The position numbers and the translations under genes are program-made. Under the pieces are notes generated by a model. It made no database searches. It was not told the DNA's origin and saw only the letters and a program-made list of their open reading frames with translations. This document shows positions 8,201 to 63,468 of a stretch of DNA of 64,000 bases, one piece after another. Each line of letters begins with the position of its first letter. Positions within the stretch are counted from its first letter, which is position 1. The stretch spans positions 3,410,001-3,474,000 of the forward strand of contig JBLDXI010000003.1 of assembly GCA_047495785.1 (NCBI GenBank). The letters are read 5' to 3'. The stretch comes from Lepidodermella squamata (taxonomy: Eukaryota; Animalia; Gastrotricha).

Positions 8201-9160
8201 ATGAAGTTAATTACCGTAATTTTGCTTGTCAGCCTGTTTGCGGGAATTGGTAAGTTTTAGTAATAAAATCTCAATCTTTTACGAACAATTCGTGACATTT
8301 CCCCAGCATTTGCCGGTGGAAAACAACGTAAAGCCGCCCCGAAGAAGAATCAAAATGCCGCTGTTGAACGCGCGTCAGCCTCTGCCTCGGCCGAGAATAC
8401 TGAAGTTGGTTATCAGGAGGCCGCTGCTTCGCAAAAGACCGCCATCACCGAGGCTGACGTCGAGCTTACCGCTGAAGATTCGGCACACGACCTTCGCAAG
8501 AAAGTATTCGCCGAGGGCCTCTACGGCCGCATCGTCAACATCCGCAAGGCGATGAAAGTCGCTGAAGCGGAACAGGCGCGCCAGGCTCACCAGGGCGGCG
8601 ATGGCGAGGCTGAAGCCGAGGTGACCGAGGTGAAAACCTCCGGCTCAGCGGCTGCCGACGAGAAGTACAACCGAGCTCAAGAATACGACGGCGTGCAGCA
8701 CCGCCGCGTCAACGGCCTCGTCAAACACACGGCCGACTCAACCAAGGGCAACGTTGTCGAGTTCAAGCGCGTCAACTACCGCAACTACGACCGTGAACGT
8801 ATCGACAAGGTGAGTGTTGAACAGGCCAATGAGGAACACGAAGAATCCGCCTCTGCCTACGCCTCGGCTACTGCGGCTCGCAAGGCCGATCAGAAGAAGC
8901 ACTACGACCAGGCTAAACGCCACCGCGTCGCCATTTCCTACGGCTCAGTCGAGGACGAAGCTTCGGCTCAGGCTTCGGCTAAACACGCCCGTCGTGGCAA
9001 GGCTCATCAACGCAAAATTAGCGTGTCGAAGGGCCGTGAATCTCGCAGTGCTAACAGCTACGGCAGTGAAGAGCACGCCTCGTCGGAGAAGAACACCGCC
9101 CGCTCGCGCAAGGTGTCCAAAAAACAAGCCCCTAAGAAGGCTAAGAAGGGCCACTACTAA
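8201..9160 (+). CDS. Secreted Ala/Lys/Glu/Ser-rich protein, divergent member of the proline-free hairpin family (~300 aa; exons 8201-8249, 8307-9160)
   Basis: Signal exon MKLITVILLVSLFAGI, G|gtaagt ... ccccag|; the phase-1 join is in frame with track ORF 8552-9160. Core GNVVEFKRVNYRNYDRERIDKVSVE...ASATAARK aligns by eye with GEVIEFKKKTFTDKGHNKVNKFSFE...AATTASRK of the 55403 gene. Ends KKGHY. Confidence 0.85.
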
Positions 9161-9396
9161 AAACCGGCAAACTTATCTCTGTTATTCAAATTTATTTAAA
9201 TTGATTATTCGATTGAGCGTAATAAAATTGCAATGTGACCTACTTTTTTTATTGCATGAGGTCAAAGTCCTAGGTCGCACACGCGCAGGTTTTTTGTGCG
9301 AAAAAGCGCACGTGCCTCCCATCTCAATCGCCACCCTAAAAATTGCTCATTCAAATCATTATTTTTCAACCTTTCACTTGAATCAATTTAACAAAA

Positions 9397-9939
9397 ATGA
9401 GAAGCTTATTATTAATCACGATTTTCGCTTGCTTCGGTGAGTTCTTATACCTTCGATATTACGATTCTACAACACCATTTTTCATTTTAGCCGCTATTAC
9501 CTTTGCGGAGGAGTCGAGCAAGCGTCGATGCCGCGAGATCCGGGACGAGTATCACCAGAAGCACCAGGCCCTATTCCGTCAGTACCAGGAGAAGTACAAG
9601 GCCCTGTCGAGCCGTTATGAGCAGAAGAATAAGGCCATCATCAACGACTATCGCCATGTTTACTCGCAGGTTTGCCGCAATGTCGCCGCGCCGAGTGATG
9701 AAACCGACGATGAGTGGACGAAAACGCCGTTTGGTGAGCTCAATTTCCGCCATGACGATGATACTAATACTGACGATGAAGATGAGACTAGTGGAGAGTC
9801 GTTCATGAAGATGGAGGCGATGTCGATGCCAGACGCTAGCGAATGGAACAAAGGCACGAAGACGACCACATTCCGCCGTGTCACTCATCGTCGCGTCTTC
9901 AAAAACGACGATTCGCCGAAAAATAAGAATAGCGAATAA
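9397..9939 (+). CDS. Secreted ~162 aa protein with a Cys-bounded helical segment and an acidic stretch (exons 9397-9436, 9491-9939)
   Basis: MRSLLLITIFACF G|gtgagt ... ttttag|; the 54-nt intron is in frame and is read through by the ORF track. Spliced N-terminus MRSLLLITIFACFAAITFA is a typical signal peptide. Tyr-rich helical segment between two Cys, then an Asp/Glu-rich region. Confidence 0.8.
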   Translation: MRSLLLITIFACFGEFLYLRYYDSTTPFFILAAITFAEESSKRRCREIRDEYHQKHQALFRQYQEKYKALSSRYEQKNKAIINDYRHVYSQVCRNVAAPSDETDDEWTKTPFGELNFRHDDDTNTDDEDETSGESFMKMEAMSMPDASEWNKGTKTTTFRRVTHRRVFKNDDSPKNKNSE

Positions 9940-10222
9940 GATTCGAAGCGACTAGTATCAGCCTTGAACTGTGAGCTGTGATGAGCTGTGAACTATAATG
10001 TTCCATATAGCGTATATTTTCCTTTGAAATTTGAATAAATTGAAATCATATAAACCGCACTGTCAAGCATTAATTTGGAAACCTTCCATCCAGTCTGAAA
10101 AAACGCTGAAAAAATGGCAAAAAATAATTTTGGCACGACTCATCGCTCAACTTGTTGAAATTTATTTCGGATTGAAGCATTTCCATTTATTAATGACCTG
10201 CGATTTTCCGGTGATTGATGCC

Positions 10223-17760: not shown

Positions 17761-18053
17761 ATGCGACCAGCTTTCATTTTCTTCCTCTTGGCCTTCATCG
17801 CCAGCCTGTGTGAGTTCCCAATATTTCGATTTTAAAAACAATCCAGCATTATTTCCATCCCTTAGTTTTCGTTTCGGGGGCTAACCCGGCTTCTGGCAAT
17901 CTGGAGGAGGCGCTTGAGAAGTACCTCGGCGACCACCCGCTGGCTCTGCAGTACCTGAACGATGACACCGATATCGACCAGTTCGTCGACCGTACCAAGT
18001 ACGTCGAAGACGCCAGCGAAGAAGTCTTTGTCGTTAACACTCACGATAATTAA
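17761..18053 (+). CDS. Small acidic secreted protein, 78 aa (exons 17761-17809, 17866-18053); absent from the ORF track
   Basis: MRPAFIFFLLAFIASL T|gtgagt ... cttag| gives FFVSGANPASGNLEEALEKYLGDHPLALQYLNDDTDIDQFVDRTKYVEDASEEVFVVNTHDN*. GC-rich codons, CGCGTG boxes at 17617 and 17633, AATAAA ~18176. Confidence 0.8.
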
Positions 18054-19711: not shown

Positions 19712-21985
19712 TCATTTGTGTTTCTTGACCAAGAGATTGAGCAGCCGTTTGACACCTTGACCACCTCTGGGACCTTTCTTCACAGTCTTGTGACACGGCA
19801 AATCCGACAACGAACTGTCGTCACGCCTCGCCGCTTTCCGGCTGAGGCGGCGCGCCAACTCGTTGAATTCGCGCTTGTTAAGGTGGAATTTGCGGCAATA
19901 ATCCCCTGCGACCTTCTTCGCAAGTTCGATCGATCGGCTAGAAGGGCTGTAGCTCTTGGCGGCATGCTTACGCCGGAAGAAACCCCTCGGGCTAGATCGG
20001 CTGATGAACCTCCTCTTCGCGACGATGTGTTCGAAACTCGACTTCGAGATTGACATGTCGTGAACACCGTGATTCTCGCAGCCCTTTTTCCGCTTCAGGG
20101 CGTTGTTGATCAGGTTCCATTTCCACTTTTTCACGCCCTCGACAATGTTGCTCGGCCACTTGCGGCGCGACCGCCAGCGCTTGTTCTTCGCCTTGCATGG
20201 CATCTCGGTTGATTTTGATATCGATTTCGAAATCGATATCGAGACCGGTGTGCACTTTGTAGTTGCTGGTTGTGTTGGCGAGGGTTCCGGGAAGGGCGTC
20301 GGTGGTGGTCGCTTAGTCGTCGGCGCTCCGCAAGTCGAAGGCGGGTGAGTTGGTGGGTTCGTAGGTGGATGCGTCGGCGGCAGGGTTGGCGGATTTGTAG
20401 GTGGATGAGTTGGCGGATTCGTCGGCGGGTGAGTTGGCGGATTAGTTGGTGGATGTGTAGGTGGGTTCGTTGGAGGATTCGTGGGTGGGTTAGTTGGCGG
20501 GTGGGTTGGCGGGTTCGTCGGCGGGTTTGTAGGTGGATTCGTTGGCGGGTGGGTTGGAGGATTCGTTGGAGGATTCGTTGGCGGGTTCGTCGGTGGGTTA
20601 GTAGGTGGATTCGTTGGCGGGTGGGTTGGAGGATTCGTCGGCGGATTAGTAGGTGGATTCGTTGGAGGATTCGTCGGTGGGTTAGTTGGAGGCTGAGTTG
20701 GCGGATTATTCCCCACCGTATTCCCAGTAGGTGGATGTGTAGGGGGATTCGTTGGCGGTTGAGTTGGAACTTTCGGCGTCGTGGTTATCGGGCATCGGTG
20801 CGGCGTAGTCGGGCACTTGTGCGTCGTTGTTTCTGGCTCCTCAGCAGGACGGCACCGGCGGTGTTTCGGTTCCTTCGGGTACTTGGCCTCGCGACAAATC
20901 CAAACGCGGCTTGAGCTGGAATCGCGAATTCTCTTCACCTGGAAACATGAAAAACAACAAAAATCACCAAAGTTTCGCAAAAAAGCAATAAATTGCAAAA
21001 TTGCACCAATAAAAACGCCTAATCCAAAATTGGTGATTTTTTCAAATTAAACTTCCCCAGCAAAAATTTCAAAGCTATCCCAGTGATTCATTTGAGGCAA
21101 TTTGACATCGAAGTTGCTGTTAAATGGGCAAAATTGACTAATTTGACTGTCTCCGGCTGTAATTTTTCCTCTCTTGAATTTCTTTTTTCTTGAAATTAAG
21201 CTTCAATGGGGTTCCACGAGGTATTCAAATTTTGGGACCTATCGGGGTTCTGAGGCCCTGGCAAGCCACCACGGTACTGTTTGCGCATCCATAACATCCA
21301 TAACTTTGTAAAAACCAGATCGGCTCTCTGAAGTTATCCCAATGGCAGGACCGAAAATTGAACGATTTAGGTTGGCCACGATTTGTCCGAGATTTAATGG
21401 CCCTAATTTCGGACGGCATTGCATAGGCAGAAGCGTTACAAATATCACGGTAAATTAATTAAATTAAAAAAAATTCGAAAATTTCAAATTTTAAATTTTA
21501 CTGAATTTTTTTGATTTCCTGCTGTATTGGTTTTTTTTCAAGTTTTCATGTCTTATTTAAAATTTAAATTTATTTAAAAAATAATTCCCAGGTTTACCTT
21601 GAATTTTTTCGAGCCGTGGCTGTCACTATGCGAGCTTCTGTGGCGGCGTTTGCATTTAGCCCGCTTACTAGCGTCACAACTCAGCTTGAAATCAGATGCT
21701 GAACTGTCTGGCTTCGGTTTTCGACCTCTGAAAGTCTTCATGCCAATCGCTCGCTTGAACGCCTCCAGCGGGCTGTAAATCTTGTTACCATCAGGGGCTG
21801 GTTTTAGCAGCTGGCGGTAATCAGCCGGCAATAACGGGAATGTGTTCAAATGATGCCTGTTTAATCCATCAGCTCTGCAAACGTAACCTTTCAATGGCAA
21901 ATATTAACAAAAAAATCGGATTAATTCTCGGATTTTTACCTAATAAGGCTACAGCGACTAATGCGCCTAATAGCAATAGCCGCAT
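19712..21985 (-). CDS. Secreted extensin/mucin-like protein with (PPTN/H)~30, Cys-containing flanks and a basic C-terminus (exons 21985-21940, ~21887-21598, 20938-19712)
   Basis: Signal exon MRLLLLGALVAVALL G|gtaaaa. Exon 2 is track ORF 21574-21900 up to FK|gtaaac; its acceptor is ambiguous by a few codons. Phase-0 join to ttccag|GTG AAG AGA in ORF 19712-20998. Confidence 0.8.
20340..20705 (-). repeat. Coding tandem repeat, 12-nt unit encoding PPT(N/H), ~30 copies
   Basis: Counted from the translation; codons vary synonymously between units. Confidence 0.95.
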
Positions 21986-24330: not shown

Positions 24331-24450
24331 AAAGAATGTGAAACATTTAGCGCCCGTACCCAGGACGCTTAAATTTAGTGCTGGAGCCTCATATTCAGTG
24401 GTGGAAATATTTGGACCCAATTAATTTTTCAATAGCTTGGTTTTACTACA

Positions 24451-25400: not shown

Positions 25401-26197
25401 TCAATCGGAGTTGTCGCTCGAGTTGTCAGAGTGCTTGGCTTGCTTCTTGCGGTGACCGCTTTCGGAGCTCGACTTCTTGGGGTGGGCCTTCTTGGCGGGG
25501 AACTTCTTGCCGCCATGGTTGTAGTGCTTGCGGCCCTTAGGAACAACAATGTCGCGGCCGATCTTCTTGCCGAAGTTGATCTTCTTGTGGTGAACCGGCT
25601 TCTTCTTGATCTGCTTGCTCTCGCTGCTCTTGCTGCTGCGGCTGCTGCGGCTGCTCTTGCTGGCGACCTTGACAGGGCGGCGGTGGACCTTCTTCGGCTT
25701 CTCAATGCTGATGCTAGGGATGCTGGCGACCTTGATCGGGTGGTGGGGCTTCTTCGGCTTCTCAGCGCTGTGGCTCGCCTTCTTGTGCGGGCGGCCGTCG
25801 TTGCCGCGGATCAGGACGCGGAACAACCGGCGGAGGATGGTCCACGCCTTCTTGCCGTTCGCCTCGTTGTACTCCTTCAGCATAGGGCTGCCGCACTTCG
25901 GAGGCTGGGGCTTCTGGTGGTGCTTCTTATCCTTCTTGAACGGGCAGTTCTTCTTCTTCTTGTCGCATTCCGGCTTCTGGTGCTCCTTGGACTTGGAGTT
26001 CGCCTCAGGTTGGGGGTCATCAACAACGATTTCGTCCTTGGGAGGGTCGGCCAATTGCTCGTCACTGCACGGCTTTTCGTGGTTAGCAGCGACAGCTTAG
26101 GAAAAAAATTAAAAAATTATTAAGCTGGATTTTTCTATTTGATTTTACCAGCGATCAAGAAACCAAAAACGGCAATGGCGAGGAAAGAAAGACGCAT
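25401..26197 (-). CDS. Secreted Lys/His/Pro-rich basic protein, ~247 aa (exons 26197-26149, 26095-25401)
   Basis: MRLSFLAIAVFGFLIA G|gtaaaa ... cctaag|CT GTC GCT GCT, in frame with track ORF 25401-26054. Four Cys in the N-terminal half; SKSSRSSRSSKSS tract. Confidence 0.85.
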
Positions 26198-27365: not shown

Positions 27366-30300
27366 TTAATGACGACGGTGGTACTTGCGAACGTGTTCCT
27401 TGAGCTGATCAGCGGCCTGGGCGTGTTCGAGGACGCGCAAAAACTCGCGCATCGGAACAACGCGATCGCGGTGATGGCGAGTTTCATCCTCGGAATCACG
27501 CGGCGGGATTTGCGCCAACATTTCCAGCAACGCGCGCTCCTCCAACTCGCGAAGGGTTCGTTTCGCCTCGTCCTCGTTGTTCTCGTCCAGGTACTCGGCG
27601 TTGTTGTCGCCATCACCGCTGTGATGCAACTGGAAACCGTGATGGCCAACTGATTTCATGTCGGTCTTCTCCTGAGACTGCTGTTGACGTTTCATCGCGG
27701 CGAAATGGCGCCTAACGTTTTCGCGCTGCTCCTCGGAAAGAGTCTTCATCTTCTTTTCTTCGTGATTTTTCACCTCTTTCGACTCGTTTTTCTTAGCCTT
27801 GGGTTCGCCGATGTGCTTCGATTTCTTTTCGGTCTTCTCCTCTTCAGGATTCTGTTGCTTCTTCTCCTGCTTTTCAGCCTTAGCCGCGAGCCTTTTGACC
27901 TTTTTGACCTTTTTCTCCCCAGATTCGGCGGCTTCATGAGACTCCGCTTTCTTGGCTTCAGGCTTCTTGACGGCTTTTTTCGGCTTTTCCTCTTCAGATT
28001 GCTTCTTCTCCTCCTCTTCATTTTCCTCGTGTTTCAAAGCTTTCTGAACTTTCTGGATCTTTCGGGTCGGCTTGGGCTGTTGTTCCTTTTCCTCTTCGGA
28101 GACTTCCACCGCTTTCTTGACCTGCTTTTTGACAGCGGTTTTCGGTTTCTTGACATGTTTCTTCACCTTGACGACCTTCTCCTCGCTTTCCTCAACGTCT
28201 TCCTCCTGGCGACGAACAGTTGGCTCTTCGTCATTCTCCTGTTCTTCCTCCTCGTTGATCGTCTGCAAGTGCTTCGACGATTTTTCGATCATTTTCACGT
28301 CGACCAGCCGATCGCCGACGTACGTGTTGCCGCGGATTTCCAACGGTTCGTGATTGACGATTTCAAGCTTGACCTGCTTCAGCATCTCGTCGCTGTTCGG
28401 GTGCACGTGATCGTCCTCTTCTTCCGGAATCGCTTCCATGCGGACCGGCTCCTCGTGACTATCGAAAAAAAAAATTAATTAATCGAATTTTGTTGAATTC
28501 AATAGAATTCAATATTGTTGAATTCAATAGAATTCAATATTGTTGAATTCAATAGATATGTTTCAATAGAGAAGCGATTTCGACATTTTCTTTTCATGAT
28601 CGATACTGATGCCTGGCATCTTATATTTTAGCTTCTTGGTACCCTAAGCTATGAAGAAAAATTATCGATTTTGGGTTCAAAGACATTTGATATCGGAAAA
28701 ATCACTGATTTTTAAGATCGATACTGGGAATCGATATCAGTTCTTCAAGCTGAAGTAATACTCGTAAACTGACCACCCAGAGCGCAAAATATGCGTAATA
28801 TCGAGGTCTATCGGTTAGGCATGAAAAGAAAAAATTGAGAATATAGAAGAATTGAACTTATAGAATTTCTGATAAAATTATGAAAATTCTAACAAATCTT
28901 CGCAATTTTCTGACGAATATTTCTATTTTTAAATTAAATTAAATTAAATTTTTCTATTTTTAAATTCGAAAAAGGACAGTTCTACACTGTTTCAGTTCGA
29001 ACAATTTGAAATATGGTTCTACACAAAGATATTTTGATTGATTTTCGTATTTTAACTTCGGCTTACTCGCGGCGCTGTTGGCGGTACTGCGAAAAATAAA
29101 CATTTTGACGCGGTGATTTCGCCGGGACCCGTTCGTAGACAATCTCAGGCTGTTCCAGGTAGACCGGGGTCTGGCGGCTTCGGACCGGCTTGCTCTCTTC
29201 AATCGGACTCTCGGCATATTGGCGGCGAGGAACTGGCTTCTCTTCATAAACTTCGACAGGCTTTTGCAGGTAACGGCGGGGCAGCTTCTTTTCGAAGTTC
29301 TCCGGGTTGTAGAACTGCTGATGAAGCGGCTGTTGCTGTTGTTGAGCTTGATCGGCGAATAATTCAGCCTGGCGGGTTCGGATTGGCTTCATAACAACCT
29401 GTTGGCGATTTTCAGCCTCGTAAAACGGCTGGCGGTTCATTTTCTCCTCGACCACAATTTCAGGCTGTTGCTGCGGCTGCTCGACCAAAACCTGGCGAAC
29501 TTGCATTTTCCGGCTCGGTTCAACCGGCTGTTGGCGAGCTTCGAACTGAGTGTTATCCTCATAAATCGGCTGCTGACGGTTCGACTTGTCATCGATAACC
29601 ATTTCATACTGTTGTTGAGGCTTTTGTTCGGCCAGCTTTTGATCAGCCATAACTTGAGCATTATTAGCGACCTGTTGTTGCTGTTGCTGTTGGAGCTGAC
29701 CGGCCGATTTCTCATTTCGAAGCTCAGCGTTGAAAATCTGCTGCAAGGTCGGCTTTTGCTTCAACAAATCAGCCAGGTTCGATTGACGCGGCTTGTCACC
29801 GAAAATTTCCGGGTGCGACAGCCGGGTTTGGGCCAAAAATTGACGAACCTGCTCGCGGCGCAAATTCTCCTCAGCACTGTCGCGAACAGCTTTCCTCGAC
29901 AAAACCCGCGGGTCGTTGACAGCAATTTGTTGCTGCTGCTGGGCTGGTTGAACCTTACGAACAGTAAACGTAACCGGGCCTTGTTGGGTATTTCGAAGGA
30001 CAGGCTGGTTAACAGCAATCGGTTGGCGCGATTTCGGGACTTGCTGATATTTGACCTGGTTCTGGACAACAGTGACCGGCGCGTTTTGTTGCGGCTTAGC
30101 AGCAACCTGAGGTTGAACCTTAGCCTGCTGGCCACCTTCCAACTGCTTGGCCTGTTGAACTAACTGATTCTTCCGTTGTTCATCGCCTGACACCTCGCCG
30201 TTCTTCTTCTTCTTAATCACCTTGGTAAGGGTTGTTTTAATCTCAACCGAATTGCCGCCCGTTTCCTTCAGCGTTTTAGTTTTCATCGTCTTGATTTCGA

Positions 30301-43685: not shown

Positions 43686-45581
43686 TTAGTAATTGCCGCG
43701 GTATTGCTTCTTGCCGCCGTGCTGCTGGCCAGCTCCGGAGTAGGAATCGCTGAAACGCTTGGCGCCGCCCTTCTTCTCATGGGCTCCAGATGAGGCGGAT
43801 TGAGCCGACTGCTTGTTGTACGAGCGAGACGAGGCGCTGAAGCTCTTATCCTGGTACTGCTGCTTCTTCGGCTGCTGCTTCTTGGCCGGCGCCTTCTTAG
43901 CCTGCTTCTTAGCCGGCTGCTTCTTGACCTGCTTCTTCGCCTTGGCGTTGTTGTATTCGGAACGGGCGGAGCGAGACGCGTAATGGCCGCTGGCGCTGGC
44001 TTTCCTGTAAGCCGCAGCCGAGTTGCGGTACTTCTTCTCGGCGGCCGAGGCGGACTTCTCGGAGGCGTACGAGGCGTACGAGGCAGAGTGAGCGCGGCGG
44101 TCGTCACGGGTGCGTTCCTTCTTGTCCAACTTCCTGCGAGTCGCAGCCTTGTTGCGGCCAGACGATTCGGCCTAAGGAAAACCAAATAAAAACAATTTAA
44201 ACAAAACAAAACAATCTAGTTCTAATGAGGACATTTCGGGTAATTTTCAACAACTAGAATAATCATTCATTTCCCAAATTGACCCCGGAAATATTCCATA
44301 ACCTCAAGGCTATGAAAACAATTTAACGATGTTGTATCGTGAACCAGTTCACGAGTCAGAACCGGTTGATATCGGCAAAATCATTGATTTGTAAAATCGA
44401 TAATTTAAATCGATATCGATCAAATTTAGCGCTGGAACCCTCACAATTTTTTTCAGATTTTAAAACTTTCGAATTTTTAGGACTTTTTGTTCCGGTAAAA
44501 GAAATTAAAAAAATAGTTTCAACAATTTTAATCTGGAAAGTTTTGAAAATTCTTTCAATTTGGTGGATTTCAATTTTTAATTTTTTAATTGCTTCTAAAT
44601 TGTTCCTTTTCGTTGTATTCTCAATTCGGTTTTTATCCCCGATTAAATTCAAAAAAATATGAATCCTATTTTGGACAAAATCCAAAATTTAACGAAAGAG
44701 CCTCAAATTTAATTTACCAATTTTATTAAGGAGGAATTTTTCATTTTTTATCTTTTTTATCCTATCCTTAATTCGGTTTTTAATATTAGTTAATTAATTT
44801 TAGTTTGATTTAAATAAATAAAACCGACCTTCTTGTACTGATGAGCAGCAGCATCGGCGGCGACCTTGTTGATGCTCTTTTTCTTGGACTTGCTGAAGTG
44901 GATCTTCTTGTAGATTTCAATGGTAATCGAGCGGTCCTTCTCCATCGAAGCATCGACCTTGAGTTCACGGTTGCGGTTCGACTTGCCAGACTTCTTGCCG
45001 CGCTTGTGCTTGTTGCTGGCAGCAGCCTCGGCCGACTCGGAGATCTTCAAATCGAACGAGTGAGACTCCTGCGATTCGCTTTTGCGCGCCTTGCGGCCGC
45101 GGCGTTTCGCGTTCGCCTTCGCGCGACGGCTTTCGTAGGTCGAATTTTTGCGCTTCTTCTCAACAGCCGACGCCGAGTAGGAGGCCTTCTTCTCAGACCG
45201 GCTGCGCTTGTAGTTGCCCGACTTTTTCTTGGGCGCCGATGATTCCTGCTTCTTCGCCTTCTTGCCCTTGCTCTTCTTACCTTTCTTGGACTTCTTAGCC
45301 TTGCTCGGCTTCTTCGCAGCAGATGAAGCAGAGTACTTCTTGTTGCCATTGTTATCGTTATTTTTATTTTCAGTACCAGGCATGCCCGGGAAAATTGGCA
45401 CGTCGATCTTCACAACGGGAATTTGAGCGCCATTGTTGTTGTCGTTCTGGCCATTCTGGTCGCCGGCGTTGTTAACAGCTGGAGAAAAAATTGAGTAAAA
45501 TCCGGAATTTTAAGAGCTTGATATTGGAAAATTACCGACGCAAAACGCGGCAATGACAGCCAAAGCCAAAATAATCCTCAT
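43686..45581 (-). CDS. Secreted Lys/Ser/Ala-rich protein, 393 aa, divergent hairpin-family member (exons 45581-45536, 45478-44829, 44171-43686)
   Basis: MRIILALAVIAAFCV G|gtaatt; phase-0 join YKK|gtcggt ... ccttag|AES. KHKRGKKSGKS and AHSASYAS segments match paralogs. Asn-rich N-terminus; ends YRGNY. Confidence 0.8.
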
Positions 45582-46096
45582 CTTTCAGATAAATATGATG
45601 AGACTGAAATTAAATTAAAAAAAATTGAAATGAAATACCTTCTTATTTCGAATTAGTTATTCCTGAATAATGATTTTTTGTAGTAAAATCAAGCGTTTTT
45701 ATTAGTGAGCCAGTGACGGTGTTGCGTCACCGGGCTGCGATCGGTTTTTCTCTCACGAGTCGCGCGAATGTTGAAATTTTTCAGTCGAAACGCGTGCTTT
45801 TGCAAAATTGTTTTTCAAGGCTAAGTAAATGCGTTGTTTCATTCATTAGGTGATCACATGGACACGTGGCGGCTAATGGTCTAGAGATACAATAACACAG
45901 GTTGACCTATTTTATTTTAGGGAAATTTGAACCGGTTTCGGAAATTAATTCAACTCACAATTGTCGCAGACAGTTTTTATTTCAAATAAATTAAAAATTA
46001 TTTCAATTTTATTTAGATTTTAGATGCTCTTCATTAGTTAGTCCTCGACTTTGATTTTTATTCCTCTCCTTTATTTTCTTGTTAGATATCGGAATA
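45582..46096. promoter_or_regulatory. Probable bidirectional promoter between head-to-head secreted-protein genes
   Basis: ATGs at 45581(-) and 46097(+) are 516 nt apart; contains ttgcgtca 45722, acgcgtg ~45790 and cacgtg ~45863. Confidence 0.5.
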
Positions 46097-47191
46097 ATGA
46101 AGGCAATTTTAGCTATCACCGTTGCCATTTTGCTGGCTTCGGCCGGTGAGTTGTCATTTTACGCTTGATTTATCTGATTTTATTCCGTTCCAGTCTTCGC
46201 CGGAGGAGCAAGGAAAGGCGGTAACAGAGGTCGCAAGTTGTCATACTCAGCATCAGTCGACAAACGCGACACCTACGACCGCAAATCCGCCTCAGCTGCA
46301 GCTGAATTCGGTGCCGTCGACTACGCCTCGGCCGACGCTTCCCACAACAAGAAGACTAGCGACAAGCGAAAACTGATCAAGAACCGATCGGCCAACCGCG
46401 AACGCGCCTCGGCCAGCTACGCCTCGGCTGGCAAGCGCGACTCAGTCTATGAACAGAAGAAATCCAAGGCTGGCAGCAAGCGTCGTGGCCGCAAGTTCCG
46501 CGCCAGTGGTTCTGGAGCTGTCCAGCAATTCGGCAAGGCGTCCTACAACTCTGGCGCAGCTGCTGCTGCCCAGAAGCACAAGCGAGGCAAGACATTCGGT
46601 AAATCACACACGCAACGCAAGGCTGGTTTCACCAAGGACGAGGACCATGACAAGACTGGAGACGAGGTTGAGTTCAAGAAGAAGGGCTTCGCCGACAAGG
46701 GCCACAATAAGGAAAACAAGTTCAGCGAAGAAAAGACGACCAAGACCTTCGGAGAAGCCAACTCCGATGCTGCTGCCACCACTGCTACCCGCAAAAAGAC
46801 TGGAAAGAAGGCCGGCGGCAAGAAGGCCCGCAAGGCTCAATCTGCGGCCTATGCGTCCTTCGACTCGACTGCCGCTGCCGCCGCTGCCTCGAAGAGCGCG
46901 AAGCGCAACAAGGCCCACAAACGCCGTGCCTCGGCCTCCGCAGCCCGTGCCTCGCAAAATGCCCATGACTTCAAGGCTAGCAACAAGAAGACCGCCGTCT
47001 CCGACTCTGCCCATGCCCGCAAGGCTGGAGCTAAGAAGTCGAAAAAGCACGCGAAAGCTAATGCTTCCCGTGGCACGAAGAAGTCGAGAAAGTCGGAAAA
47101 TGCTCGCATTAATACTGTTCCTGCCAAGAAAAAAGTTGCCCATTCTTTCGATAGCGTCGCCTCGGAGCTAAGCAACTCAAGTGATTTTTGA
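46097..47191 (+). CDS. Secreted Lys/Ala/Ser-rich hairpin-family protein, 348 aa (exons 46097-46145, 46194-47191)
   Basis: MKAILAITVAILLASA G|gtgagt ... ttccag|TC TTC GCC; in frame with track ORF 46238-47191; DKGHNK core. Confidence 0.9.
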
Positions 47192-47750: not shown

Positions 47751-48532
47751 TAGGCAATCCGCTTCGACGTCGCAGAGCACCGTAGGTATAATATCACTGA
47801 CATTATTAGCCCATTTCGGTTAATTGGGTAAAATCCATAGAAATCTCAACGGGTAAAATCAGACGTTTTTTTGCAGAACATTATCCGTATCTTTCTAGCT
47901 TCTGGATTGTCCGAAACTCAAGTAGGTAATTAGATCCCACTTTTCATGCAAAGGTTCAAGTAGTGACTTTTCGATTTTCGATTTGGGAAACTTGACCCCT
48001 CTGCTAAATAAAACATTTCCAAAATTAATTAACGCTATAATGTTCCACATGCTTCAACCGTAATTAGAATAGCTTCATTTCTGCGAACTAGAGTACATTT
48101 CAAGATCCAACATTCAAAAAGAGCGGACCAACGGACTTTTCCAATAATCATTTCCTTAAGATTTAGTCGTTTCGGCTCACTCGGAAAAAAGGTTTTTCAC
48201 CAGTTGAAATTGCGGCTATTTTATAGATTTCACGTTTTAGAACCTGAATTCACCTGATCGGGGCAAATTTGTTAAAAATGAAAATATTTCCAATTTCTTC
48301 AAGCGTGATGTGTTGTTTACAATCAGTAAATCAAATCGCGTGATCAACCTTGATGAAAAACATGCTTTCCACGCCGTTTTCCACACCGGAATCGCGTGCT
48401 CGCTCGGTAGTTTTCCCGGTTGCGCAACACGTCGATTGATTGGATATAAAACCAACCCGGAATCAAGACCAATATCATCAAGTTTTAATATTTCTATATT
48501 TATTATTCAATTAAAACATATCTATTCCTAAA

Positions 48533-49854
48533 ATGCGTTTCGCTCTCGTAGCAGCAGTCGCTGCCCTGTATTGCGTTGGTAGGTCTATAAATTTTCAATT
48601 ATAGCCAGTGATTTAATTTTTTGGATTCGATTTTCAGCCGCCATCTCTGCTGATGCCTCGGCTTCAGTTGACAAGAAATCGGCGTCTGCCTCGGCTGGCA
48701 TTGACAACGTCAAGAAGACTGGTCTGACCTTCATCCACGGCAAGCGCGGTGGTCGTCGCGGTGGTAACGGTGCCTCAGCCTCTGTCAACAAGAACTCTGC
48801 CTCCGCCTCGGCTGGCGACAAGCGTGGCAAGCGCGGATTCTTTGGTCGCCGTCGTCGCGGCAACTTCGCTTCTGCCTCAGTTGACAAGAATTCCGCCTCT
48901 GCTTCAGCTGGCAATGGTGGCCGCCGTGGCGGTCGCTTCTTCGGCCACAAGGGCCGTCGCGGCAACTTCGCCTCAGCCTCAGTTAACAAGAACTCCGCCT
49001 CCGCTTCGGCTGGCAACGGTGGTCGCCGTCATGGTCGTTTCTTCGGCCACAAGGGTCGTCGTGGTGGCAACTTCGCCTCGGCTTCAGTCAACAAGAACTC
49101 CGCCTCCGCTTCGGCTGGCTCCAACAAGGGCCGCAGGGGCCACAAGGGCTTCGGCCGTCGCCACCACGCTGGTCGCTACTTCGGCCACGGTCGCCGCCGT
49201 GGAGGAAACTTCGCCTCTGCCTCGGTCAACAAGCGCTCCGCCTCGGCTGCTGCCGGCAAGTTCCGCGGCCGCCGTGGTCATCATGGCAAGTTCTTCGGCC
49301 GTCGTCACGGTGGTCGTCGTGGTGGCAACTTTGCTTCCGCCTCTGTAAACAAGCGTTCCGCCTCTGCTGCCGCTGGCAACTTCCGCGGCCGTCGTGGTCA
49401 CGGATACTACTTCGGACGCCGTCATGGCGGTCGTCGCGGCGGCAACTTCGCCTCGGCTTCGGTTAACAAGAACTCTGCTTCGGCTTCTGCTGGCAACTTC
49501 CGTGGCCGCCGTGGTCACCATGGCAAGTTCTTCGGTCGTCGTCACGGTGGTCGTCGTGGAAGCTTCGCCTCAGCCTCCGTCAACAAACGCTCTGCCTCTG
49601 CTGCCGCTGGAAACTTCCGTGGCCGTCGCGGTCACTTCGGACGCGGTCGTCGCGGTAACTTCGCCTCTGCCTCGGTTAACAAGCGATCTGCCTCTGCCTC
49701 GGCTGGCAATGGCCGCCGTGGTGGTCGCTTCTTCGGCCACAAGGGTCGTCGTGGCAACTTCGCCTCGGCTTCAGTCAACAAGAACTCCGCCTCTGCCTCG
49801 GCTGGCTCCAACGGCAAGCGCGGTGGATTCAAGCACGGTCGCCGTCACTTCTAA
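48533..49854 (+). CDS. Secreted 420 aa Gly/Arg/Ala/Ser block-copolymer structural protein (exons 48533-48578, 48638-49854); true frame absent from the ORF track
   Basis: MRFALVAAVAALYCV G|gtaggt ... ttttcag|CC GCC ATC TCT GCT; open to TAA 49852-49854. Eleven copies of ASASV(N/D)K(N/R/K)SASA(S/A)AG separated by GRRGGRFFGHKGRR-type blocks. TATAAAA at ~48445. Confidence 0.9.
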
Positions 49855-54304: not shown

Positions 54305-55403
54305 CTAGTAGTAGTGCTTGCCACCCTTCTTGCCTCCCTTCTTGCCGCCCTTCTTGCCGTAGCCACCATCGCGATAGCTGGCAGATTCACCGGCATGGAA
54401 GTCGTGGGTGGCGCGTTCAGCCGAGGCGGAGGCACGTTTGCGGCTGTGCTTGGCTCCAGCCTTGCGGGTGTGGGCAGAGTCGGAGACGGCGGTCTTCTTG
54501 CTGCCGGCCTTGTAGTCGCGGGCGTTGCGCGAGTCACGGGCAACGGAGGCCGAGGCGCGGCGGTGGTGGGCCTTGTTGCGCTTCGCCTTCTTCTCAGCAG
54601 CGGCGGCCGAGGCCTTCGAGTCGCGGGAAGCGTAGTCGGCAGAGTGGGCCTTGCGGGACTTCTTGCCGTGGGCCTTCTTGGCGGTCTTCTTGCGGCTGGC
54701 AGTGGTGGCGGCGCCGTCAGAATCGGCCTTGGCGAACTCTTGCGAGCCGGACTCGAAGCTGAACTTGTTGACCTTGTTGTGGCCCTTGTCGGTGAAGGTC
54801 TTCTTCTTGAACTCGATCACCTCGCCGGCCTTGTCGCGGGCCTGGTCCTTCTGGAAAGCAGCCTTGCGCTTGTGGTCGGCGCGGCCGGTCTTCTTGTTGC
54901 GCTTGTGCTTCTGGGCAGCGGCGGCGGCGCCAGAGTCGGCGTAGGCGTTGTCGTGCTTGGCGAAGGCAGCCGAGTCGCTCTTGCGGATCACGCGGTTGCG
55001 GCGCTTGCTGCCGGCCTTGGACTTCTTCTGGTCGTAGGCAGAGTCACGCTTGCCAGCCGAGGCGTAGCTGGCCGAGGCGCGTTCGGCGCTGGCCGATCGG
55101 GTCTTGATCAGCTTGCGCTTGTCGCTGGTCTTCTTGTTGTGAGAAGCATCGGCCGAGGCGTAGTCGAAGGCACCGTTTTCTTGTTCAGCAGAGGCGGACT
55201 TGCGGTCGTAGGTGTCGCGTTGGTCGACCGAGGCGGAGAAGGAGGCCTGTTTGCCACCCTTCTTACCACCCTTGCCTTTTCCATAGCCGCCAGCGAGGAC
55301 TGAAGCGCAAAATCATATATTTTCCGAGATATTGAAAATTACGCAAATACTCACCAGCCGACGACAAAAGCGCGATAACAGCAATAGCGAGAATAACCCT
55401 CAT
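54305..55403 (-). CDS. Secreted Lys/Ala/Ser-rich hairpin-family protein, 347 aa (exons 55403-55355, 55299-54305)
   Basis: MRVILAIAVIALLSSA G|gtgagt ... cttcag|TC CTC GCT GGC GGC. GGKK repeats at both ends, DKGHNK centre, ends KHYY. No Pro, Cys or Trp seen in the protein. Confidence 0.9.
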
Positions 55404-56533: not shown

Positions 56534-58238
56534 ATGCGGATTTTTTTCCCGATCGCCATTGCGGCGCTATTCTGCGGTAACTTCAAAACATTTTTAAACA
56601 TTCTAAATAATTTAAAAAAATTAGGAAAAATTAATGGAAAATTTATTTAATTAATTCACGAGTGATTTGCGCTTTCGGACACCTCAATCAATTTTCATTT
56701 TAATTTTTTCTTATTTTAATTCAATTTAAAACGGAATTTAATTTGAAATTTTAATTTTTTCTGTAATTCAAGTTGCTGTTTCGGCTAACAACCGTTACGA
56801 CTCTGAAGATTCGCGTTCCTACTCTGACTACTCGGAATCGCGGCCGCACCACGGTCGTTACCGGAAGCACGGCTACAGCAGCGGCAGCGACAGCTACTCG
56901 CACGGTTCCGGCGGCTATTACCGCGGCTACAATGCCCGCGGAAACCCGATCAGGCTGCGCAACGCCGGGCCTGAGCAGCCTAGCGAGGCTAAGCCCGCCG
57001 CCATCCCGGCCGGTGGTGAACTGGACGTTGAGAAGTTCAAGGAATCTGGCAAGACGAAGATCGAAGCTGACGCCAAGTCCCTCGTAGCCAATGGCCAGAA
57101 CGTCCAGACTTTCGACAAGGCGGAAACCTCGAAGAAGACCGCCGAGGAGACCAAGGCGTCTGCTAAGGCCAAGTCGGAGAAGGAGAAGCTCGACATCTCC
57201 GTCAGCGCCACTGTTGAGGACAAGAAGTCGAAGAAGGACGCGAAGAAGTCGTGGAAGAAGAAGGCCAGCCACCAGCGCAAGAACTACAACAAGCACTCGC
57301 GTTCTAGCCAAGCGTCTACCTCTGCCAAGTCCAGGAACGAGAAGGCCAAGATCCGCGGCCGTGGCAAGTTCAACAAGCACGGCAAGAACAACCAGGAGTA
57401 CGAGGTTGACGCCGGCACTGAGAAGAAGCGCGATACTGACGTCATCACGTTCAGCCGCAACACCGACAAGGGCCACGATAAGACCTGGACCAAGAGCAAG
57501 GGCAAGACCAATACCGAGGACGCTGAATCTGGTGCTCTGAGCGGTTCGATCAAGACGAAGGCGTCCAAGAAGCACGCTAAGGCGAACAAGAAGGGCAAGA
57601 GCAAGGGCACGAAGAAGGGCTACTCGGCTGCCTCGAGGTACGCCAGCTACTCGTCCGACCAGCACGACAAGAAGCGGAAGCAGAAGGCCCGCCTCAGCGC
57701 CGACGTCAAGTACAACAAGGGCAAGAAGTACGCGAGTGCCAGCTACGAGAACAAGAAGAAGGCGAGCGAGAGCGCCTCGACGAAATCATCGAAGAAGGCG
57801 AACAAGGCGAAGATCGCGGCGAAGGATAAGTCCGTCTCTTACCACTCGAATTCCGAAGTTTCTATCAGCACCAAGAAGCAAGTCGCCCCGAAGAAGAAGG
57901 CGGTTAAGAAGCCTTCGAAGTCCGTAACCAAGGAATCGTCTGGTTCTCATTCGTACGTTCCCAAGAAGAAGCAACCGAAGAAGCAACCGAAGAAGGCCGC
58001 CAAAAAGCCGAAGAAGTCTGTTAGCAAGGAATCATCTGGCTCGCATTCGCCTGAGCCGAAGAAGCCCCAGCCGAAGAAGCCGAAAAAGCCGGTGCCGAAG
58101 AAGAAGCAGTCATCAAGCGGTGACAGCAAGAAGTCGAGCTACGAGTCGTGGAGCTACGACGGTAAGAAGGGCGGCAAGAAGGGCAAGAAAGCTGCCAAGG
58201 GCAAGAAGGGCGGTGCTTTCTTCGACTTGGATCATTAA
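56534..58238 (+). CDS. Secreted Lys/Ser-rich hairpin-family protein (subfamily B), 502 aa (exons 56534-56576, 56773-58238); true frame absent from the ORF track
   Basis: MRIFFPIAIAALFC G|gtaact ... ttcaag|TT GCT GTT TCG GCT; open to TAA 58236-58238. Tyr/Ser/Gly/His N-terminal block, ITFSRNTDKGHDKTWTK core, KKP tail, ends FFDLDH. Confidence 0.88.
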
Positions 58239-60583: not shown

Positions 60584-61109
60584 AATAATAAAAATATAAT
60601 AAAATACTAATTTCAAGCAATTGGGAAAATATGTTCTAGTTCAAATTTTTTGTCTAGCAAATTTAGGCCACTCGTGGGGCGTATAAGTGTGTTCACGTGA
60701 TTTTTTTCCTATCGTCACAAAAAATCAATCAATCGCGCTATAAGGTGTCAATAATACGAATTAAAATGCGGTCAGAGCCATCATTATGATATTTTAAATA
60801 ATTGATTTTTCCGATAGGAGCTGAAGTACCATGAAGCTAAACAAAATCACAAGGTCATGGGTCATCAATATTCCCAGTATCAATCAACACTTTTTGAGGT
60901 ACAATTTTTGAAATTAAATTTCATTTTATTGTCCATGATTTATCATTAATTATTTGCTCATCTGTCGTATTTTCATCGCCCGCTGTATTATTTCTTTTCA
61001 GTTTTCTGAAAATTATCATTGTCGGAAATTCGGTCGAATCGGTTTTATCGGTGCCCGTGCCAAGAACTTCTCTCAGCGCAAAAATAACCACCCTGTGATG
61101 CGTAGCAAG

Positions 61110-61190
61110 TCGCGTGCCAAGGAAAGACGCGTGCCGCGCGCGAATCCACCGGGGTTGCGCAACACCTGAGCGGCGGGCGTTTTATAAGAA
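61110..61190 (+). promoter_or_regulatory. Putative promoter module of the 61283 gene: CGCGTG x2, TTGCGCAA, TATA-like
   Basis: cgcgtg ~61111 and ~61129, ttgcgcaa 61155-61162, tttataag ~61181; the same combination recurs before other cluster genes. Confidence 0.55.
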
Positions 61191-61282
61191 AAAACACACG
61201 ACTCGTAAACATTTTTTCTTTGAAGTTTCAAGATATTTTTATAACTATTAATATTTATTTTATCAAGTATTGAAACTGTGTC

Positions 61283-63468
61283 ATGCGGGCATTGCTTACT
61301 ATCGTCGTAGCGGTAGCGCTGTTCGGTGAGTTTTAAAGACGCTTTTGCCGCGTTTCTTTATTCATGTTTTCCGTTCTTTTATAGCTGCCCTCACTGACGC
61401 CCAGCGAGGCCAGAAACCGGATCGAACACCAAAGGATGATACACCAAGGGAAGATCGTACTCCTAGGGAAGATCGTACTCCAAGAGAAGATAGGGCACCG
61501 AAAGAAGAACGAGTGGTTCCTGATGCTCCGCAAGAAGAGCGTTCTCCCAAGGAAGAACGACCTGCTAAAGAAGAACGGCCTGCGAAGGAAGAACGACCTC
61601 CCAAGGAAGAACAACCTGCTAAAGAAGAACGGCCTGCTAAGGAAGAACAGCCTGCGAAGGAAGAACGTCCTGCTAAAGAAGAACGGCCTGCTAAAGAAGA
61701 ACAACCTGCGAAGGAAGAACGACCTCCCAAGGAAGAACAACCTGCGAAGGAAGAACGGCCTCCGAAGGAAGAACAACCTGCTAAAGAAGAACGGCCTCCG
61801 AAGGAAGAACGTCCTCCCAAGGAAGAACAACCTGCGAAGGAAGAACGGCCTGCTAAAGAAGAACAACCTGCGAAGGAAGAACGTCCTCCCAAGGAAGAGC
61901 GGCCGCCGAAGGAAGAACAACCTGCGAAGGAAGAGCGTACTGTTCCAAGAGAAGAACGTGTTCCTGACGTTCCGAAGGAGGCTGCTCCGAGGGAAGAACG
62001 ACCTGCGAAAGAAGAACGTGCCGCGAGGATTCCAGTTGAGCGGACCGAAAGGAAAGAGATCGATCGTGAGGTGAGGCCCGAACGAGAAGAACGCAGTCGT
62101 GTGGTGCGGCCGGAAAGAACAGAGCGGCGCAAACCTCAGGATGAGGTGAGGTACAAGTCGAAGGGCCGCAAGAAGTATAGCGACAGCGACAAGGAGGTGA
62201 GCGCTGGTTATTCGGCCCGGGACACCGCTCAACGACGCAAGGCGAGAAGGAGCAGCTCAGAGCGCACCAAGGCGGCTGCGAAGAAGAAGTCGGCCAAGGA
62301 GAAGCTCGACATCGGCATCAGCGCCACTATTGAAGACGCCAAGTCGAAAAAGGACGCGAAGAAGTCGTGGAAGAAGAAGGCCAGCCGGTCGCGTGGTTCA
62401 TTAGCCAAACACTCCGATTCGTACAAGGCGTCTGCTGCTGCGAAATCCAGGAAGGAGGCTGCGAGGATCCGCGGCCGTGGCAAGTTCAACAAGCACGGCA
62501 AGTTCAACCAGGAGAATGAGATCGACGCCGGCACTGAAAACACCCGCAATACTGATGCCATCACGTTCACCCGCAATACCGACAAGGGTCACGATAAGAC
62601 CTGGACCAAGAACAAGGGCAAGGTCAACACCGAGTTCGGCGAAGGGGCTGCCCTGAGCGGTTCGATCGAGACGAAGGCGTCGAAGAAGAGCGCCAAGGCG
62701 AGCAAGAAGGGCAAGAGCAAGGCCGTCAAGGCGAGCAAGTCGTCTGCCTCGGAGTACGCCAGCTACTCGTCGAACCAGCTCGACAAGAAGCGGAAGCAGA
62801 AGGCCCGTCTGAGCGCTGATATCAAGTACAGCAAGGGCAAGAAGTACGCCAAGGCTAGCTACGAGAACAAGAAGAAATCGAGCGAGAGCGCCTCGGCCAA
62901 GACGTCGAAGAAGGCCAACAAGGCGAAGTTCGCGAAGAAGTCCAAGTCGGTTTCGTACAAGGCCAAATCTGAAGCTTCGTACAAGAGCAAGAAGCAAGTC
63001 GCCCCGGCTAAGAAGAAGGCTATCAGGAAGTCGAAGTCCGAATCTGAGGAATCATCTGGTTCTAATTCGGCGCCGAAGAAGCCCCAGTTCAAGAGACCGG
63101 TGAAGGTGGGAAAGAAGTCCAAAAGCGAGGAATCTTCCGGTTCCCATTCCTCAGGTTCAAAGAAGCCTCAGTTCAAGAGACCGGTGAAAGTGGCGAAGAA
63201 GCAAGGCAAGAAGTCCGAAAGTGAAGAATCTTCCGGTTCAGATTCGCCTGCTCCGAAGAAGCGACAGCAGAAGAAGTTCATCAAGAAGCAAGCGAAATCG
63301 AAGTCTGAAAGCGAATCCGTCTCATCGGCGCCGAAAAGGAACAAGAAGTTTGCCAAAGAATCTGAGAGCGATTCGCAAGAAGAGTTCAGCGGCAGCTACC
63401 AAGACAAGAAGAGCAACAAGTTTGGCAAGAAGAAAAACCGCAGCAGCTTCTTCAGCGATCTTCATTAG
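61283..63468 (+). CDS. Secreted 708 aa protein: (KEE[R/Q]P[A/P])n polyampholyte, hairpin-family core (subfamily B) and Ser/Glu/Lys tail (exons 61283-61325, 61385-63468)
   Basis: MRALLTIVVAVALF G|gtgagt ... tttatag|CT GCC CTC, in frame with the track ORF; core closely similar to the 56534 gene; ends FFSDLH. Confidence 0.9.
61549..61938 (+). repeat. Coding tandem repeat, 18-nt unit encoding KEE(R/Q)P(A/P), ~21 copies
   Basis: Read directly from sequence and translation. Confidence 0.95.

Follow-up and report, generated by a model that had tools for sequence, protein, structure and literature searches.

In insects, the chorion and larval glue (Sgs) genes are small genes in tandem. Their products, low-complexity and fast-evolving, come in huge quantities from a single secretory epithelium. 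The genes carry short common promoter motifs close to the TATA box, and C/EBP-type sites are known in moth chorion promoters. The SCPP cluster of vertebrates originated by tandem duplication, and its products jointly serve a single class of extracellular material. Here, we describe 16 genes whose secreted products are for the most part very basic and which are spread across 55 kb of the 64-kb stretch of DNA analysed (the window; Table 1). The locus resembles the chorion and Sgs loci in its clustered genes and in a signal-peptide first exon followed by a short intron (15 of 16 genes here), a likeness of architecture from which homology does not follow. Its proteins have no sequence relationship to chorion or Sgs proteins, which are Gly/Tyr/Cys-rich or heavily Thr-glycosylated, whereas those of the cluster are strongly cationic and rich in Lys, Ala and Ser. 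With the SCPP genes, it shares the clustering of secreted disordered proteins, a common exon architecture and the loss of similarity between members; however, SCPPs belong to another lineage and are acidic or Pro/Gln-rich, while the cluster is basic, and no link to mineral was seen here.

Table 1. Genes of the cluster and an example of the promoter cassette. Coordinates are those of the window, exons follow the direction of transcription, and upstream sites are in nt relative to the ATG unless a window position is given.
Feature	Position	Strand	Exons and gene model	Predicted product	Upstream sites
G01	8201..9160	+	8201-8249, 8307-9160	secreted, Ala/Lys/Glu-rich, 300 aa, pI 9.6, C-terminus KKGHY	CACGCG -169, -134
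G02	9397..9939	+	9397-9436, 9491-9939	secreted singleton, 162 aa, near neutral; helical-looking N-terminal half, 2 Cys, acidic tail	CACGCG -117; extended initiator TCATTCAAA -50
G03	17761..18053	+	17761-17809, 17866-18053	small, acidic, secreted, 78 aa	CGCGTG -144, -128
G04	19712..21985	-	21985-21940, 21887-21598, 20938-19712; splice signals only	basic, secreted, 520 aa, pI 10.8; tandem repeat 24/48 nt at 20340-20707	CGCGTG -187, -167
G05	25401..26197	-	26197-26149, 26095-25401	secreted, Lys/Ser/Pro/His-rich, 247 aa, pI 10.2	CACGCG -249, -192, -134; TTACGCAAC -166, TATA box next
G06	29063..30670	-	30670-30622, 30564-29063	secreted, Gln/Glu/Lys-rich, 516 aa	CACGCG/CGCGTG -240, -204/-202; TTGCGTAA -168
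G07	31305..32102	-	single-exon ORF; signal-like N-terminus	acidic, secreted, 265 aa, pI 4.7	CACGCG -215, -169
G08	34218..36053	-	36053-36008, 35191-34218; 816-nt intron; splice signals only	basic, secreted, 339 aa, poly-Thr stretch	CACGCG -178
G09	36515..37948	-	37948-37900, 37842-36515	secreted polycation, Lys/Ser/Pro/Arg-rich, 458 aa, pI 11.05, net +91	CGCGTG -177, -146
G10	39785..42391	-	42391-42340, 42290-42111, 41822-41427, 41259-39785; last two junctions from splice signals only	~700 aa, net +127	CACGCG -180; TTGCGCAAC -146
G11	43686..45671	-	three coding exons; 5'UTR exon seen 45639 to ~45671	family member, 393 aa, pI 10.5	CACGCG at 45791
G12	46097..47191	+	splice 46145/46194 in RNA	348 aa, Ala 20%, Lys 17%, Ser 13%, pI 10.6
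G13	48533..49854	+	48533-48578, 48638-49854	420 aa, pI 12.0	CGCGTG -196, -140; TTGCGCAAC -113; TATAAAA -88; TCATCA -58
G14	54305..55403	-	55403-55355, 55299-54305	family member, 347 aa, ends GGYGKGKGGKKGGK and GGKKGGKKGGKHYY	CACGCG -153; CGCGTG -134; TTGCGTAAC -107; TATTTAA -82; TCATCA -51
G15	56534..58238	+	56534-56576, 56773-58238; 196-nt intron	502 aa, Lys 23%, Ser 16%	cassette at -158, -145, -115, -91, -61
G16	61283..63468	+	61283-61325, 61385-63468	708 aa; tandem repeat 18/54 nt at 61544-61934	CGCGTG -172, -155; TTGCGCAAC -128
Cassette (G13)	48337..48480	+			CGCGTG twice, TTGCGCAAC palindrome, TATA, TCATCA initiator

Gene architecture and transcription

An earlier note on this DNA had proposed 16 starts with signal peptides, and an ATG is indeed present at each of them, on the strand given there or the opposite one. 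Every start is of signal type, with M-K/R (15 genes) or M-L (G07) followed by a hydrophobic stretch whose 10-residue Kyte-Doolittle mean lies between 2.75 and 3.49. The shared architecture described in the same note holds for 15 of the genes, G07 being the single-exon exception. In these, the signal-type stretch forms a mini-exon of 40-52 nt, whose GT donor usually reads GTAAGT or GTGAGT, and the intron that follows is in phase 1 in all 15; 12 introns measure 48-59 nt, the others being the longer ones of G15 and G08. A rule-based scan for such mini-exons on both strands returned 14 matches, all of them genes of the cluster, against a mean of 0.23 in shuffled sequences (n=30). AATAAA lies within 200 nt of the stop codon in 15 of the 16 genes.

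RNA contigs bear out four of the predicted splices, as the earlier note had asked of the gene models, in a comparison that covered 6 kb and three genes (G11, G12 and G13) with samples carrying no tissue or stage label. For G11, runs X1 and X3 contain the joints 45536/45478 (57 nt), 44828/44170 (657 nt) and 45639/45581, the last a 57-nt intron in the 5'UTR; the 657-nt intron adds a third coding exon, and thus the gene starting at 45581 ends at 43686. In G13, the start of exon 2 appears as a loose end at 48578. Word depth, an overestimate owing to paralogues and internal repeats, reached 1.2e4-4.3e4 in the exons of G12 (X1) and up to 3.8e4 in G13, and was about zero in the spacer downstream of G12 (47.4-48.4 kb). 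The G11 variants in a related sample fall chiefly at third codon positions. For all three genes, the contigs show transcription and the modelled splicing; coverage is very deep in two of them.

Relationships and composition of the proteins

Seven genes (G01, G10, G11, G12, G14, G15 and G16, with G12 as reference member) are duplicates of one Ala/Lys/Ser-rich ancestor. By BLASTP, G14 is 68% identical to G12, and G15 and G16 share 74% identity over 242 aa; the family core of G10 is 87% identical to G12, and G01 is a distant member (BLASTP 1e-7 to G14 and 1e-6 to G12; also aligned). G10 consists, in order, of the signal, a 22-aa motif, a Lys-rich exon, the family core and a Lys/Ser/Tyr-rich tail ending in YHHH, and its motif recurs at the C-terminus of G09 (68% over 22 aa, E 2e-6, BLASTP). 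A lone CACGCG upstream of G10, with no further copy inside it, fits one gene rather than several. G15 has a Tyr/His/Gly/Ser-rich N-terminal part, followed by a distant family core and by Ser-Gly-Ser and Lys-Pro-Lys blocks, while G16 joins a distant core to an (EERPAK)n polyampholyte that makes up its N-terminal half, its blocks alternating between acidic Ser/Glu and basic Lys.

The nine genes outside the family show no full-length similarity to one another (BLASTP). For none of the cluster proteins was a relative found in Pfam, in PDB or among 1.84 billion proteins searched by profile. With hmmscan, none of the 16 bodies scored above the Pfam gathering score, chorion and glue profiles included; the sole chorion or glue match was a sub-threshold one between the Thr run of G08 and New_glue (18 bits, cut-off 31). 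The cluster is a real set of taxon-restricted genes for proteins with predicted secretion signals.

Strongly cationic and acidic members had both been reported, and both were found: 12 of the 16 proteins have a pI of 9.6-12.0 and a net charge of +13 to +127, and two are acidic (G03, pI 4.05; G07, pI 4.71). Compositional extremity applies to 14 proteins, with an amino-acid entropy of 3.15-3.96 bits; the lipocalin, BTB and transferase-like genes of the window reach 4.06-4.16. At 4.07 bits, G02 and G07 are hardly low-complexity. The claimed codon bias is likewise borne out, the AAG share of Lys codons being 0.52-1.00 in 15 cluster genes (1.00 in G05) and 0.22-0.44 in the other genes of the window. 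Composition and codon bias are consistent with heavy expression. Sizes range from 78 to 708 aa, mostly 250-700, Cys occurs in almost none of the proteins, and His/Tyr tags close many C-termini. The Pro/Thr member and the polyampholyte of the earlier note are G04, with a (PPTN/PPTH)n core, and G16; its 'Gly/Ala block copolymer', G13, had to be redescribed, since it alternates 11 times between a 15-aa Ala/Ser block (ASASVNK.SASA.AG) and 15-29 aa rich in Gly, Arg, His and Phe. In silk-like block copolymers (fibroin, suckerin, caddisfly (SX)n type), blocks of small residues that can form beta-sheet take regular turns with spacers that are Gly-rich or charged. The 11 units of G13 may be of this kind; no homologue was found, and AF2 of the related G12 gave helices (pLDDT ~50) rather than strands.

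Compared by composition, the cluster resembles underwater adhesives of the coacervate type, notably sandcastle-worm cement, with its secreted Gly/Lys/His/Tyr-rich polycations and acidic partners. Tails of the GGYGK/GGKKGG type occur in G14 and G15, and in G15 and G16 Ser/Glu blocks with Ser-x-Glu kinase-type sites alternate with Lys blocks. Unlike Pc1-Pc5, the cluster contains no Gly/Lys/Tyr/His decapeptide array and no polyserine protein (a search for Ser runs in its proteins found only Ser-x-Ser patterns), and its acidic members are just 78 and 265 aa long.

The same compositions would also suit disordered LEA-like or stress-tolerance proteins, which would not build a material but coat or fill the extracellular space upon drying or freezing. 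Ala/Lys/Ser-rich sequences without Cys, Pro or Trp (as in G12) and with 6-9% hydrophobic residues fit this, as do the very deep RNA coverage and the AF2 model of G12 (mean pLDDT 49.7), which has long low-confidence helices, not strands, as in amphipathic LEA-type proteins. However, the 16 bodies have no match at E up to 0.01 to the Pfam LEA profiles, which recognise the 11-mer repeat of group 3 (hydrophilin-type) proteins, or to other stress families, and the extreme positive charge, the Tyr/His tags and the Pro/Thr, Gln-rich and Gly/Arg members are unlike one protective class, so that we consider this reading improbable.

Little credence is likewise given to a role in host defence, in which the products would be secreted antimicrobial proteins or multi-peptide precursors cut at dibasic sites, as when the Gly/Arg/His/Phe blocks of G13 are freed from between spacer blocks. 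Strong positive charge runs throughout the cluster, G13 has 36 dibasic sites and seven R-x-K/R-R sites flanking its 11 units, and clustering, fast evolution and absent homologues are typical of immune effectors; bZIP (C/EBP-type) sites, too, are found in immune promoters. Against this, the number of R-x-K/R-R sites in G13 is a consequence of 16% of its residues being Arg, most of the proteins are 250-700 aa long and lack a periodic cleavage pattern, a scan of the 16 promoters for kappa-B-like sites gave a single weak match, and very deep coverage was seen in two RNA samples that were apparently unchallenged.

Shared upstream motifs

CACGCG is the most enriched hexamer in the windows from -330 to -100 upstream of the cluster ATGs: 30 of its 45 copies in the 64 kb lie in these regions (binomial 5e-27), so that two thirds of the copies fall within 6% of the sequence. 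All 16 genes have one to three sites, 117-306 nt 5' of the ATG, and CACGTG is present in eight of the promoters. A C/EBP-like palindrome, TTRCGYAA, precedes seven genes (G05, G06, G10 and G13-G16); its form TTGCGYAAC has nine matches against 1.5 expected, and five of the seven cluster sites lie 100-146 nt before the ATG. Before G13-G16, the C/EBP-like site stands ~17 nt upstream of the TATA box and the initiator ~24 nt further on, the order and similar spacing of the G13 cassette being kept before G14, G15 and G16 and looser before G05 and G10. The initiators resemble TCAKTY. The earlier note had claimed shared upstream motifs without naming these; the CACGCG enrichment upstream of all 16 genes and the palindrome before seven are newly found here.

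Beyond these short motifs, the promoters share no alignable DNA, which argues that the motifs are not remnants of recent duplication. The presence of the hexamer before all 16 genes, homologous or not, together with a bZIP-type palindrome in seven, argues for common regulation, and the cluster is probably a co-regulated set. In insects, the juvenile-hormone receptor Met/SRC binds an E-box-like CACGCG/CACGTG site in the upstream regions of locust Mcm4 and of the early trypsin gene of mosquitoes (PMC4207617). The likeness of the cluster promoters to these targets is one of hexamer identity, and hints of an arthropod setting are limited to the TCAKTY-like initiators and the ApoD-like lipocalin described below. 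Hairy/HES-type proteins and further bHLH factors recognise CACGCG as well.

It is unlikely, in our judgement, that the genes are merely unrelated secreted neighbours with differing tissues and roles, and that their common features are general to secreted or highly expressed genes. The nine members without mutual similarity would fit such a view, and so would the depth of G11, which is far below that of G12 and G13 in a ratio that varies between the two RNA samples. CACGCG also occurs once ~95 nt before the transferase-like and BTB genes and may thus be more widespread among the promoters of this genome. However, it is absent before four further genes, secreted or close by (an ApoD-like lipocalin, most of whose nearest clusters are arthropod, two trypsins and the ORF at 27366-28439; 0 of 4), its copies are concentrated as described above, and a cassette in the same order precedes G13-G16.

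Proposed material and its significance

We lean slightly towards a co-regulated set of taxon-restricted genes whose secreted, largely disordered products are assembled into one material; most plausibly, the products are components of one extracellular material. Shared signals, architecture and motifs, three transcribed genes and the lack of described relatives agree with the earlier suggestion of a toolkit for one gland or material, in which the single gland or material itself is the inferred part. A bHLH-type factor reading CACG(C/T)G and a bZIP factor would switch on all 16 genes together in what may be a professional secretory cell type. The dozen polycations, two small polyanions, the polyampholyte and the serine-rich block proteins would then be exported jointly and assemble outside the cell into a single material, which may be a glue or cement, a coat, a tube or the envelope of eggs or sperm packets. 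Assembly may proceed by charge-driven condensation, with later hardening via Lys, His and Tyr; no cross-linking enzyme was found within the window. Given how few and small the acidic partners are relative to the polycations, the scheme would require phosphoserine or a polyanion that is not a protein. More tentatively, and with appreciable doubt, the locus may specify an undescribed biomaterial of orphan polycations and polyanions, a polyampholyte and a block copolymer, under the control of a bHLH factor (possibly a hormone receptor) and a C/EBP-type factor; it would form a charge-condensed glue, coat or fibre that does not require Cys or Pro, and the locus would extend tens of kb past the window.

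Were all of these proteins made in a single gland, the locus would list the components of a natural polyelectrolyte material and contain the promoter code that drives it. Being mostly 250-700 aa long, nearly free of Cys and largely free of Pro, the proteins should be easy to express and to test for coacervation, adhesion and fibre formation. The cluster would also illustrate that non-homologous secreted genes can join one regulatory set by gaining a six-base motif. Should one of the alternative readings be true, it would still be a clean case of lineage-restricted birth of secreted genes and of their tandem expansion.

Sixteen secreted-protein genes and their neighbours

The window is eukaryotic and gene-dense, with a G+C content of about 44%, and the genes flanking or interspersed with the 16 secreted-protein genes (G01–G16 in positional order, 8201–63468) are listed in the table below. 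All 16 coordinates proposed as gene starts in an earlier note proved to be ATGs (seven on the forward strand and nine on the reverse), and each opens a signal-like sequence of Met-Lys/Arg (Met-Leu in one) followed by a hydrophobic stretch. The shared architecture that the note had described was also recovered: 15 of the 16 genes have a mini-exon of 40–52 nt closing at a GT donor, AATAAA lies within 200 nt of the stop codon in 15, and the introns that follow the signal mini-exons are in phase 1 throughout, twelve of them being 48–59 nt long and the others 196 and 816 nt. A rule-based search for such exons on both strands gave 14 hits, all among the 16 genes, against a mean of 0.23 in block shuffles. 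It misses G07 (ATG 32102) because this is a single-exon gene, and G15 (ATG 56534) because its donor is GTAACT. A relaxed scan for additional signal exons picked up just the lipocalin and the trypsin-like genes and no extra cluster members, and none of the ORFs checked as extra members at 22–25.4 kb was convincing. Overall, the observation of a secreted-protein cluster stands, with four gene models corrected.

Neighbouring genes in the window
Feature	Position	Strand	Remarks
Giant mucin-like ORF	79-7338	+	2419 aa, enters from window start
Lipocalin, ApoD/Blc-type	11300-11842
Trypsin-like genes, two paralogues	12400-13897 and 15347-16914	both -
Glu/Lys-rich ORF	27366-28439	-	357 aa, between G05 and G06
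Transferase-like, membrane-anchored protein	38412-39408	-	two overlapping ORFs, between G09 and G10
Truncated second BTB exon copy	50108-50341	-	~2 kb downstream of BTB-BACK gene
BTB-BACK gene	51271-52615	-

The giant ORF encodes a Ser/Thr-rich mucin-like ectodomain, a transmembrane segment (at about 4760) and a cytoplasmic tail of basic repeats of about 40 aa each (FYDGSTLSR...APFRPK); Pfam returned no family above threshold for it and no match for the transferase-like protein. Both trypsin-like genes encode a signal peptide and a long acidic pro-region ending in ...ARIVGG. By Atlas features alone, the C-terminal part of the BTB-BACK product is similar to BTBD9-type F5/8-C proteins; the truncated exon copy is probably a pseudogene fragment. 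The Glu/Lys-rich ORF, with neither a signal exon nor an upstream CACGCG, is probably an unrelated intracellular protein. Database searches found no relatives of the lipocalin and BACK-domain proteins and did not return even the two proteins themselves, three ORFs looked up by exact sequence gave no match, and Rfam and tRNA scans were empty.

Upstream sequences of the cluster genes

In an unbiased k-mer count upstream of the 16 ATGs, words containing CGCGTG/CACGCG ranked top. Between −330 and −100, no other hexamer comes near the enrichment of CACGCG (binomial 5e-27): the whole window holds 45 copies where 25 are expected, and 30 of the 45 fall in this interval, where all 16 genes have the hexamer, usually as paired sites 13–60 nt apart. 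At the equivalent upstream position, it is absent from the lipocalin gene, both trypsin-like genes and the Glu/Lys-rich ORF; a single CACGCG stands about 95–98 nt before the ATG in each of the transferase-like and BTB genes. A second motif, TTGCGYAAC, has 9 matches in the window against 1.5 expected, with five of seven sites standing 100–146 nt before cluster ATGs, and looser versions (TTRCGYAA) precede two further cluster genes. From G13 to G16, the elements form an ordered cassette: two E-box-like sites, a bZIP palindrome 20–30 nt on, a TATA box about 17 nt past the palindrome, a TCATY initiator about 24 nt downstream of the TATA box and the ATG 50–60 nt past the initiator. The upstream motif that the earlier note had reported as shared is probably the longer initiator of G01, G02, G08 and G10, which reads TTCATTCAAA and then ATTAT.

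Apart from these motifs, the promoters cannot be aligned, even among close paralogues, and the motifs were therefore kept or acquired rather than passively inherited. Duplication of promoter and signal exon as a unit was rejected, since the −350 to +110 segments gave just 16–40-nt matches in blastn. In insects, CACGCG is a proven site of Met/SRC, the juvenile-hormone receptor (PMC4207617). The hexamer is common to Met/SRC target promoters and to this cluster, whose host need not be an arthropod. Further bHLH proteins, among them those of Hairy/HES type, also read CACGCG.

Transcripts and repeats at 44001–50000

The RNA comparison covered this single 6-kb stretch, set against contigs from three public sequencing runs. 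One of them (X1) behaves as RNA, with high exon depth and a depth of about 0 in the 47.4–48.4-kb spacer. Its word depths, 1.2e4–4.3e4 on the G12 exon and as high as 3.8e4 in G13, are raised by paralogues and internal repeats and were used solely to call these genes transcribed and deeply covered. Contig joints confirm the intron after the signal exon in G11 (45536/45478) and in G12 (46145/46194), and a loose end confirms that of G13, in which 48578 is joined to an exon beginning CCGCCATC. Two introns of G11 had not been predicted: one of 57 nt in the 5'UTR, immediately before the ATG, and one of 657 nt (44828/44170) that links the ORF at 44170–43686 to this gene. In a DNA-like run from a near-identical organism, G11 differs by about 2%, and 13 of the 21 differences are synonymous, which indicates that its modelled frame is under constraint.

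G11 and G12 diverge from a 515-bp spacer (45582–46096) with one CACGCG at 45791. G12 may have a 5'UTR intron as well: 11 nt before its ATG, where the RNA contig stops, lies the end of a TTGTTAG acceptor. Cluster genes are flanked by dispersed repeats of high copy number in the intergenic segments 44201–44600 and 47401–47800, where word depth in the DNA-like run X2 is 5,000–14,000, compared with about 75 in single-copy sequence. Over the G12 body (46201–47200), X2 depth is 7–30 times single-copy, word depth being no copy number, and about 3000 distinct contigs with a likeness of 90–100% come from X1. The family to which G12 belongs may have many further copies elsewhere in the genome.

Composition, relationships and possible roles

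Twelve of the 16 mature proteins have a pI of 9.6–12.0 and a net charge of +13 to +127, while G03 (pI 4.05) and G07 (pI 4.71) are acidic. The polyampholyte and the Pro/Thr protein noted earlier were both recognized, G16 opening as (EERPAK)n and G04 having (PPTN/PPTH)n at its core; G13 is an alternating series of 11 Ala/Ser blocks and blocks of Gly/Arg/His/Phe. The reported AAG bias holds as well: AAG makes up 0.52–1.00 of lysine codons in 15 of the 16 genes against 0.22–0.44 in genes outside the cluster, a preference that fits selection for heavy translation.

Seven genes (G01, G10, G11, G12, G14, G15 and G16) form one family. G10, G12 and G14 are 68–87% identical in pairs; G11 is 35–37% and G01 26–33% identical to these three; identity between G15 and G16 is 74%, and both align to the family core. 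The Ala/Ser block of G13 resembles, by eye only, the family's N-terminal SASV-DK...SASA motif, and G09 shares a 22-aa motif with G10, while G02 to G08 are singletons. A word-indexed search with G12, the reference member, found no relatives, nor did a PDB search; a profile of the seven members gave zero hits among 1.84 billion representatives at E up to 0.001, and Pfam returned nothing above threshold for any gene body. Arthropod leads from the Atlas (DUF4779, His-rich or cuticle-like clusters) were dismissed, their score of 0.75 lying below a meaningful level, and no matching publication turned up in a literature search on lysine-rich adhesive clusters of a comparable kind.

These 16 genes might simply be an unrelated neighbourhood; against this, the same 16 are marked by four independent features (signal mini-exon, extreme composition, lack of relatives and CACGCG sites). 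Given this convergence, the best reading is that they are a co-regulated set.

Hydrophobic residues make up 6–12% of family members, compared with 31–38% of the window's folded proteins. AF2 on the family alignment gave a mean pLDDT of 49.7, with two long helical stretches of low confidence, the centre being disordered; a beta-hairpin fold, which had been considered, was set aside in favour of these helices, although the model is not decisive. The most fitting description of the proteins is as disordered polyelectrolytes. Disorder would also suit protective disordered proteins, and a high positive charge would suit immune polycations; a kappa-B search gave a single weak match across the 16 promoters. 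The most economical explanation for abundant secreted polycations (a dozen) with a few polyanions is that they serve an extracellular material. Such a material could form by charge-driven condensation, with Ser-x-Glu sites that could be phosphorylated, tanning via Lys/His/Tyr and His/Tyr C-terminal tags as a proposed chemical feature. The earlier proposal that the cluster is the toolkit of one gland or material is supported in part, and the promoter signature strengthens it. The proteins are new families, and clustered, co-regulated structural secretory genes are a type of system already known.
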